Below, one piece after another: positions 52,206-52,286 of a stretch of DNA of 64,000 nt. Within the stretch, counting starts at the first letter, position 1. Every line of letters begins with the position of its first letter. Under the pieces are notes generated by a model. The model had not been told where the DNA came from and searched no databases. It worked only from the letters and a program-made list of their open reading frames with translations. Source of the DNA: Selaginella moellendorffii (lineage: Eukaryota; Plantae; Lycopodiophyta); NCBI RefSeq assembly GCF_000143415.4, contig NW_003314316.1:1076666-1140665 (forward strand), given 5' to 3'. Made by a program: the position numbers and the translations under genes.

Positions 52206-52286
52206 CCCACTATCCCTACTATACATTTGGAACCCCCCATAGCCCCCCCCCCCCCCTTGAGGAACACACGCTTTGGGCTTTCACCC
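52206..52286 (-). promoter_or_regulatory. rDNA-IGS-like, putative Pol I promoter module in the 5' LTR of C
   Basis: GGGTGAAAGCCCAAAGCG-N45-TATAGTAGGGATAGTGGG. Copy in the 3' LTR at 45914-45995 has TATAATAGGG. Confidence 0.55.

Follow-up and report, generated by a model that had tools for sequence, protein, structure and literature searches.

The borrowing of rRNA-gene promoters by mobile elements is known for the 5S gene with its polymerase III promoter (Cassandra) and, as far as spacer repeats are concerned, from one DNA transposon (Pokey). The LTRs of Cassandra TRIMs carry a 5S polymerase III promoter, which is kept matched (PMC10853983). Pokey, a piggyBac DNA transposon of Daphnia, possesses spacer-derived 200-bp repeats; promoter or enhancer activity is ascribed to these subrepeats (PMC3849761). 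The transcription initiation sequence of rDNA is TATAGTAGGG in Avena (PMC5407837), a close variant, TATATAAGGGG, serves as the start motif in Brassica (PMC4691072), and the plant rDNA start motif has the form TATA[T/G][A/T][A/G]GGG (PMC5407837, PMC4691072). A literature search yielded no LTR retroelement described as carrying a polymerase-I-type or spacer promoter unit in its LTR.

The window, i.e., the whole 64,000-nucleotide stretch of Selaginella moellendorffii DNA analysed here, contains four complete LTR elements (B1, B2, B3 and C) to the left of a piece of rDNA, which is located on the minus strand and forms the right end of the window. We lean, if only slightly, towards reading an 81-nt stretch in the 5' LTR of element C as the core of a promoter module of ~90-130 bp that sits in the middle of the LTRs of two unrelated gene-less families, is homologous to a unit of the 26S-5S spacer and would have reached its present positions in a history of three steps.

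Results

Organization of the window

The coordinates of the analysed features are collected in Table 1. The LTRs of all four elements have TG...CA ends, and all four primer-binding sites are of the initiator-tRNA-Met type; perfect 5-bp target-site duplications flank B1, B3 and C (ATCGC on both sides of C), and a polypurine tract precedes the 3' LTR of C, so the structural hallmarks of an LTR retrotransposon were found in C and likewise in B1 and B3. The internal domains of the B elements are 4.1 kb long and ~90% identical among the three copies; their longest ORF has 108 aa, and neither a Pfam match nor a tblastn match to the Ty3/gypsy pol of the window was obtained for them. The internal domain of C (5.2 kb) contains no ORF longer than 89 aa, its longest ORF pieces gave no Pfam match and no similarity to pol was detected by tblastn. 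A multi-kb internal domain devoid of gag and pol and conserved among copies, as in LARDs, was thus observed in both B and C. The elements are gene-less and yet the two LTRs of B1 are nearly identical and the B internal domains are alike, which indicates non-autonomous, LARD-like elements and not decayed autonomous ones.

Table 1. Positions of the features in the window, with the strand and the properties recorded for each.
Feature	Position	Strand	Remarks
PPR gene	3781-6018	minus	98% identity to SELMODRAFT_228785
Element B1	12505-20285	minus	LTRs 12505-14414 and 18562-20285, 99.8% identical; TSD TAGCG
B1 modules	13431-13499, 19488-19556	minus	
Element B2	22413-~29674	plus	older B subfamily; LTRs 22413-24000 and 28065-~29674, 94.4% identical
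B2 5' LTR box 2	23055-23064	plus	18-mer gone via ~50-bp deletion
B2 3' LTR module	28666-28746	plus	C-like spacer
Element B3	29719-37210	minus	LTRs 29719-31411 and 35566-37210, 96.6% identical; TSD GTATA
B3 modules	30643-30711, 36490-36558	minus	
Element C	45394-52840	minus	complete LTR retrotransposon, 7.4 kb; LTR pair 98.3% identical
C 3' LTR	45394-46549	minus	1156 bp
C 3' LTR module	45914-45995	minus	exact 18-mer 45978-45995, 46-nt gap, then TATAATAGGG
5S rRNA-derived fragment, C internal domain	47594-47681	minus	sense orientation
C 5' LTR	51709-52840	minus	1132 bp, TG...CA
Full C 5' LTR block homologous to B2 3' LTR	52188-52318	minus	LTR positions 523-653
C 5' LTR module core	52206-52286	minus	LTR positions 555-635 of 1132, sense orientation
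Box 2, TATAGTAGGGATAGTGGG	52206-52223	minus	TATAGTAGGG overlapping GGATAGTGGG; 45 nt after box 1
Box 1, exact 18-mer GGGTGAAAGCCCAAAGCG	52269-52286	minus	begins at C LTR position 555
N gap	54908-55007		18S-proximal gene promoter beyond gap, outside window
5S rRNA gene within spacer	55711-55829	minus	orientation same as 26S
rDNA spacer subrepeats	57179-58965	minus	~238-240 bp each
26S rRNA gene, 3' part	59088-60607	minus	model positions 1889-3399; upstream of spacer

A second scaffold segment, L029 (GL377616.1, positions 492270-514183, reversed), is collinear with positions 1712-11390 and 37211-39328 of the window and is without the entire 25.8-kb transposon nest located between them (window positions 11391-37210). 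The site of B3 is empty in L029, with a single GTATA. The absence of the nest and the empty B3 site indicate that the elements were inserted after the two sequences had diverged. At the position of the nest, L029 contains ~0.8 kb of AT-rich sequence instead. Three further Selaginella loci, reached via PPR genes, were gene-dense and contained no B, C or spacer sequence. No relatives turned up in protein searches with ORFs spanning the spacer subrepeats or a B LTR, and exact look-ups of five ORFs of the window gave no match.

The B LTRs contain tandem arrays of 6-, 12-, 23- and 35-nt repeats, 0.3-0.7 kb long, directly upstream of the 18-mer described below (13510-14183, 19567-20054, 22646-23014, 28298-28642, 30712-31178 and 36572-36977). 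The length of the array differs by 186 nt between the two LTRs of B1 itself, and the array repeat resembles, in inverted orientation, part of the spacer subrepeat. A second Ty3/gypsy pol (11402-12502 and 20462-22139) was split once by the insertion of B1, and more than one frame is represented among its pieces.

The 5S-derived fragment in the internal domain of C scored 33.7 bits with the Rfam 5S model (E 5e-4), which is under the gathering score, and shared 93% identity with the 5S gene of the window across 58 nt; about 34 model positions are missing from it. Three 5S-like fragments (40001-40088, 40401-40488 and 40830-40917, plus strand) were detected in an older C-like element (38-42.2 kb). 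The truncated fragments of both elements reached 24-36 bits in Rfam, all below the gathering score of 38, and each is embedded in a 195-nt unit, of which C has one in its internal domain and the older element has three. The 5S fragments of the C family show that these elements have taken up rDNA-unit sequence. No module was recognisable in the older C-like element (38-42.2 kb), the 3' LTR of which (from 41776) is AT-decayed. The C-like LTR remnants at 41776-42760 and 38105-38444 are strongly AT-enriched in comparison with C, and this enrichment looks like the C-to-T decay of old methylated copies.

In the rDNA piece, the 26S gene is cut at 60607 (model position 1889) and adjoins a Ty3/gypsy pol ORF (61029-63947) encoding reverse transcriptase, RNase H and integrase, with gag and protease absent upstream. 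The cut 26S gene and the abutting gypsy pol (60607-63947) indicate an interrupted or orphan unit; truncated and located amid transposons, the piece may not be representative of active units. The partial first spacer subrepeat adjoining the 26S end (58905-59010, minus strand) is without the AGCCCAAAG part of the 18-mer and also without the ATAGT core of box 2, in which it differs from the seven internal units. A box-2-like 15-mer, AGTAGGGGGAGTGTG, is located directly upstream of the 5S gene (55840-55854). It belongs to a near-palindrome (55839-55866, minus strand), in which it faces the 5S gene and differs by one mismatch from the corresponding 15-mer of B2, with ATAGTGGGG on the opposite strand of the near-palindrome.

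A second motif common to the LTRs and the rDNA spacer is the G-box-like 9-mer CACGTGGCA, with 17 occurrences in the window against 0.3 expected. It clusters in the 3' parts of the C LTRs, at the starts of the B2 and B3 LTRs and in the spacer around the 5S gene (28110, 31358, 37157, 45477-45526, 51782-51818, 55219-55509 and 56293-56304).

The two boxes and their copies

The module is composed of an 18-mer (box 1) followed by box 2. Exact copies of the 18-mer were found 14 times in the window, with 0.02 expected by chance: five in B LTRs, two in C LTRs and seven in spacer subrepeats, where it is followed after 41 nt by ATAGTGGGG. Copies with one to three mismatches numbered zero in the window. 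Box 2 of the C 3' LTR carries one G-to-A change. In every LTR, the module is in sense orientation, i.e., toward the internal domain, and located at 37-49% of the LTR length. Box 1 is separated from the ATAGT core of box 2 by 41-42 nt in B1, B3, B4 (a B-like LTR of L029, see below) and the rDNA spacer subrepeats, by 46-47 nt in C and by 54 nt in B2.

The first-pass annotation had stated that C keeps the exact 18-mer with the second box 45-46 nt downstream, and both C LTRs indeed read so (45 and 46 nt); the C-like spacer that it had noticed in the 3' LTR of B2 was recovered as well, G runs included. The 18-mer that it had assigned to the B LTRs is present in five of six, but was lost from the B2 5' LTR by the ~50-bp deletion. 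The spacing which it had called roughly conserved deserves the adverb, as the range across the lineages is 41-54 nt.

One additional copy of the module beyond the window was available, in B4, a decayed B-like LTR of L029 (positions 1021-2257) that is 74% identical to B2 and has no counterpart in the window. B4 has the spacer of the B2/C type, an intact box 2 and an 18-mer with one CpG-type change. The presence of the B2-type spacer in B4 indicates that this type is old within the B family.

When a very large metagenome collection was scanned with the 18-mer, 28 matches were returned, roughly as many as chance would give; all 28 stood in unrelated contexts, and box 2 accompanied none of them. 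To our knowledge, the 18-mer is not a described plant promoter element; its AGCCCA core might be a site-II/TCP-like sequence, which we regard as no more than a candidate reading. The 10-mer GGATAGTGGG recurs at a non-homologous place in the B3 LTRs, and this occurrence makes it weaker evidence that C is linked directly to the spacer.

Extent of the homology

The B and C LTRs differ in length (1.6-1.9 kb and 1.13-1.16 kb, respectively), in their termini and in the polypurine tract. A sensitive blastn comparison (word size 7, E<=10) revealed similarity between them only at positions 523-653 of the C LTR and none between the internal domains, so kinship of B and C over their whole length was rejected. 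The claim that the two LTR families are otherwise dissimilar was therefore borne out, and it would have fallen had the LTRs aligned throughout. The block of C aligned with the B2 3' LTR over 130 columns (73% identity with gaps, E 4e-17).

The homologous block measures ~91 nt when C is compared with the rDNA spacer and ~130 nt when it is compared with B2; for B1 and the rDNA spacer it reaches ~150 nt. Positions 60-208 of the 238-nt spacer unit aligned with positions 667-817 of the B1 LTR (E 5e-11), and its positions 120-210 with positions 554-653 of the C LTR (E 2e-6), to which span the similarity of C is limited. Homologues of the rDNA spacer subrepeats, as are borne by Pokey, are thus present in C and in B1. 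The 12-nt tandem array of the B LTR has an inverted match in the upstream part of the spacer unit.

Identity within the block amounted to 72% between B1 and the spacer, 65% between C and the spacer, 65% between B2 and B1 and 79% between B2 and C, with the whole LTRs of B2 and B1 being ~80% identical. The sequence between the boxes is 72-74% identical in B2 and C, and 32 further nt upstream of the 18-mer are common to both. The 18-mer is exact in the rDNA and LTR copies, yet the block is only 65-72% identical to rDNA, both being compared within one species. What the lineages have in common is a single uninterrupted stretch of homology, 90-130 bp long, rather than a pair of separate boxes. The intervening sequence can be recognised in every lineage, which argues against two boxes kept in otherwise unrelated sequence. 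The earlier view of a diverged spacer with retained boxes holds in that the boxes are far better conserved, but has to be amended in that the sequence between them is still recognisably homologous.

Conservation of the boxes

The alignment between lineages, with one representative each of the spacer, B1, B2 and C, comprised 77 block columns, 34 of which were invariant. The longest invariant run was the 18-mer; a run of this length was never reached in 200,000 column permutations (P<5e-6), and outside it 27% of the remaining block columns were invariant. Conservation within the B family was examined in four lineages, the decayed B4 included. Over the whole ~1.7-kb B LTR, the longest invariant run (18 nt) fell on box 2 together with the flank upstream of it, and the second longest (16 nt) on box 1. 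Given 68% invariant columns within B, runs of 16-18 nt alone are not very improbable; the telling point is that the top two runs coincide with the boxes common to C and rDNA. Both comparisons, which cover four to five independent lineages of one genome, show the boxes to be much more conserved than the neighbouring sequence, and the proposal of selected boxes passed this check too.

Resemblance to a polymerase I promoter

The first 10 nt of box 2 agree in every position (10 of 10) with the polymerase I start motif of Avena. This motif, TATAGTAGGG, is exact in all six B LTRs and in the C 5' LTR, i.e., seven occurrences against 0.07 expected. Numbered from the A preceding the G run as +1, the 18-mer extends from about -69 to -47, and the module as a whole (about -70 to +10) is similar in length to the minimal plant polymerase I promoter that Doelling and Pikaard reportedly defined in 1995. 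Box 1 lies ~50-70 nt upstream of box 2, where an upstream promoter element would be expected. Spacer promoters occur as tandem copies in rDNA spacers. The U3/R boundary of an LTR is expected about where the module sits (37-49% of the LTR length). The start motif, the size, the tandem repetition in the spacer and the position and orientation in the LTRs together suggest an LTR core promoter, and the module is probably the core promoter, still putative, of the B and C LTRs.

A more far-reaching proposal is that B and C took over a polymerase-I-type rDNA promoter and would be transcribed from it, that the boxes would be kept matched to the rDNA transcription factors of the host and that the cassette would move from one LTR family to another, unrelated one; such elements would be to polymerase I what Cassandra is to polymerase III. 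As elements without genes have no need of messenger RNA, transcription by polymerase I is conceivable. The copies borne by the elements are located in LTRs and not in the spacer upstream of 18S, and the related rDNA copies are located between 26S and 5S. Taken as a whole, this proposal seems to us rather doubtful.

Discussion

The history towards which we lean would have started with one exchange between rDNA and an ancestral B-type LTR, with transfer from rDNA to the LTR as the favoured direction. In the second step, the spacer between the boxes would have diverged among the B elements, the B1/B3 type giving rise to the B2/B4 type with its G runs. In the third step, a block of the B2 type would have been transferred to the C LTR through recombination between elements, e.g., by template switching during reverse transcription. 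Both boxes have stayed constant, and the sequence between and around them has drifted.

The first step could also have proceeded the other way round. The module would then be an ordinary polymerase II LTR promoter, a B-like LTR fragment would have landed in the spacer and been amplified there in tandem, and the likeness to a polymerase I start would be a coincidence of a TATA plus a G run. Such a fragment left no other part of the B LTR in the spacer, neither the termini nor the ~900 nt downstream of box 2, although the spacer unit does hold the inverted stretch resembling the 12-nt tandem repeat of the B LTR, and rDNA spacers have been argued to collect, and to be full of, transposon remnants (PMC10319768). 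Box 2 itself can be read in two ways. The GGATAGTGGG of the spacer subrepeats is a poorer match to the start motif than the LTR box, so transfer from the LTR to the spacer would also fit this "cleaner" LTR version; however, the LTR box agrees at all ten positions with a start motif published for plant rDNA, and a box-2-like 15-mer stands directly upstream of the 5S gene too. The C family, moreover, took up 5S sequence, the source of which can only be rDNA. Transfer from the LTR to the spacer is thus possible but unlikely. The match of box 2 to the rDNA start motif, the absence of other LTR parts from the spacer and the uptake of 5S sequence argue for transfer from rDNA to the LTR, and the module is probably of rDNA origin.

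The third step of the favoured history concerns the relation of C to B. C is nearest to the B2/B4 version of the block (79%) and only 65% identical to the rDNA spacer, and exchange between the families fits this better than a second capture from the spacer. Of the "repeated capture or exchange between families" invoked in the first-pass annotation, exchange between LTR families is therefore retained (C-B2, 79%) and repeated capture from the spacer is not (C-spacer, 65%). Descent of B and C from one ancestral LTR, of which the promoter core alone would still be recognisable, could account for the primer-binding-site type, the TG...CA ends and the non-autonomy common to both families, and constraint in LTRs is usually strongest in the promoter core. 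It would, however, leave the alignment of non-box sequence between C and B2 unaccounted for (72-74% in the spacer, with the 32 nt upstream) while the other ~1000 nt of the LTR and the 4-5 kb of internal domain give no match at E<=10. The block of B2 resembles that of C (79%) more than that of B1 (65%), despite ~80% identity between the whole LTRs of B2 and B1; this inversion, confined to the block, is a mosaic pattern, and common descent is in our view quite improbable. Chance, low-complexity convergence or an assembly artefact has a negligible probability, for although G runs and GAGTCC-type microsatellites surround the module and the 10-mer GGATAGTGGG recurs at a non-homologous site, 14 exact 18-mers stand against 0.02 expected, the alignments are ordered, collinear and in the same orientation, the module is found in both LTRs of each element and again on an independent scaffold, and none of the 28 unrelated metagenome matches has box 2.

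If the module works as it looks, non-coding retroelements could tap the strongest growth-linked transcription system of the cell, the module would be a natural marker for the rDNA promoter elements of a lycophyte, and the movement of promoter cassettes between unrelated LTR families would be documented. If it is only a shared remnant, it would still be a clean example of exchange between transposons and the rDNA spacer with a measurable signature of constraint.

Comparison with known systems

Chimeric or mosaic LTRs arise by recombination between retroelement families. The LTRs described here resemble them in having a short internal segment with a history of its own (B2 relative to B1, C relative to B2) and differ from known mosaic LTRs in that the exchanged segment is also common to rDNA. 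With the gene and spacer promoters of plant rDNA, the module shares box 2, which equals the Avena start motif, and likewise the tandem arrangement of its unit in the spacer (PMC5407837, PMC4691072); unlike these promoters, it is located in an LTR outside rDNA.

Pokey, like B and C, is a mobile element bearing rDNA spacer subrepeats, which in Pokey are located upstream of its body (PMC3849761). Pokey belongs to the DNA transposons, has rDNA as its target and bears repeats that undergo concerted evolution with rDNA (PMC3849761). In contrast, B and C are LTR retroelements dispersed among genes, carry a single unit each and may lack overall concerted evolution, only the boxes being identical to rDNA in a block of 65-72% identity.

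An assignment of B and C to the Cassandra TRIMs themselves was considered and rejected, as they have no 5S in the LTR and are not miniature; Rfam gave no 5S match in any B or C LTR, and the 5S fragment of C is internal and truncated. Cassandra carries an internal 5S polymerase III promoter in very short LTRs, whereas the candidate promoter of B and C resembles the polymerase-I-type unit of the 26S-5S spacer. Cassandra is also miniature, well under ~1 kb, whereas B and C are LARD-like elements of 7-8 kb (C being 7.4 kb long with LTRs of 1.13-1.16 kb). Like B and C, Cassandra elements are non-autonomous plant LTR retrotransposons, the LTRs of which contain a promoter-bearing piece of the rRNA gene unit (PMC10853983), a property that in B and C remains putative. 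In both systems, the promoter, presumably borrowed in the case of B and C, is conserved and the rest of the LTR varies between families.
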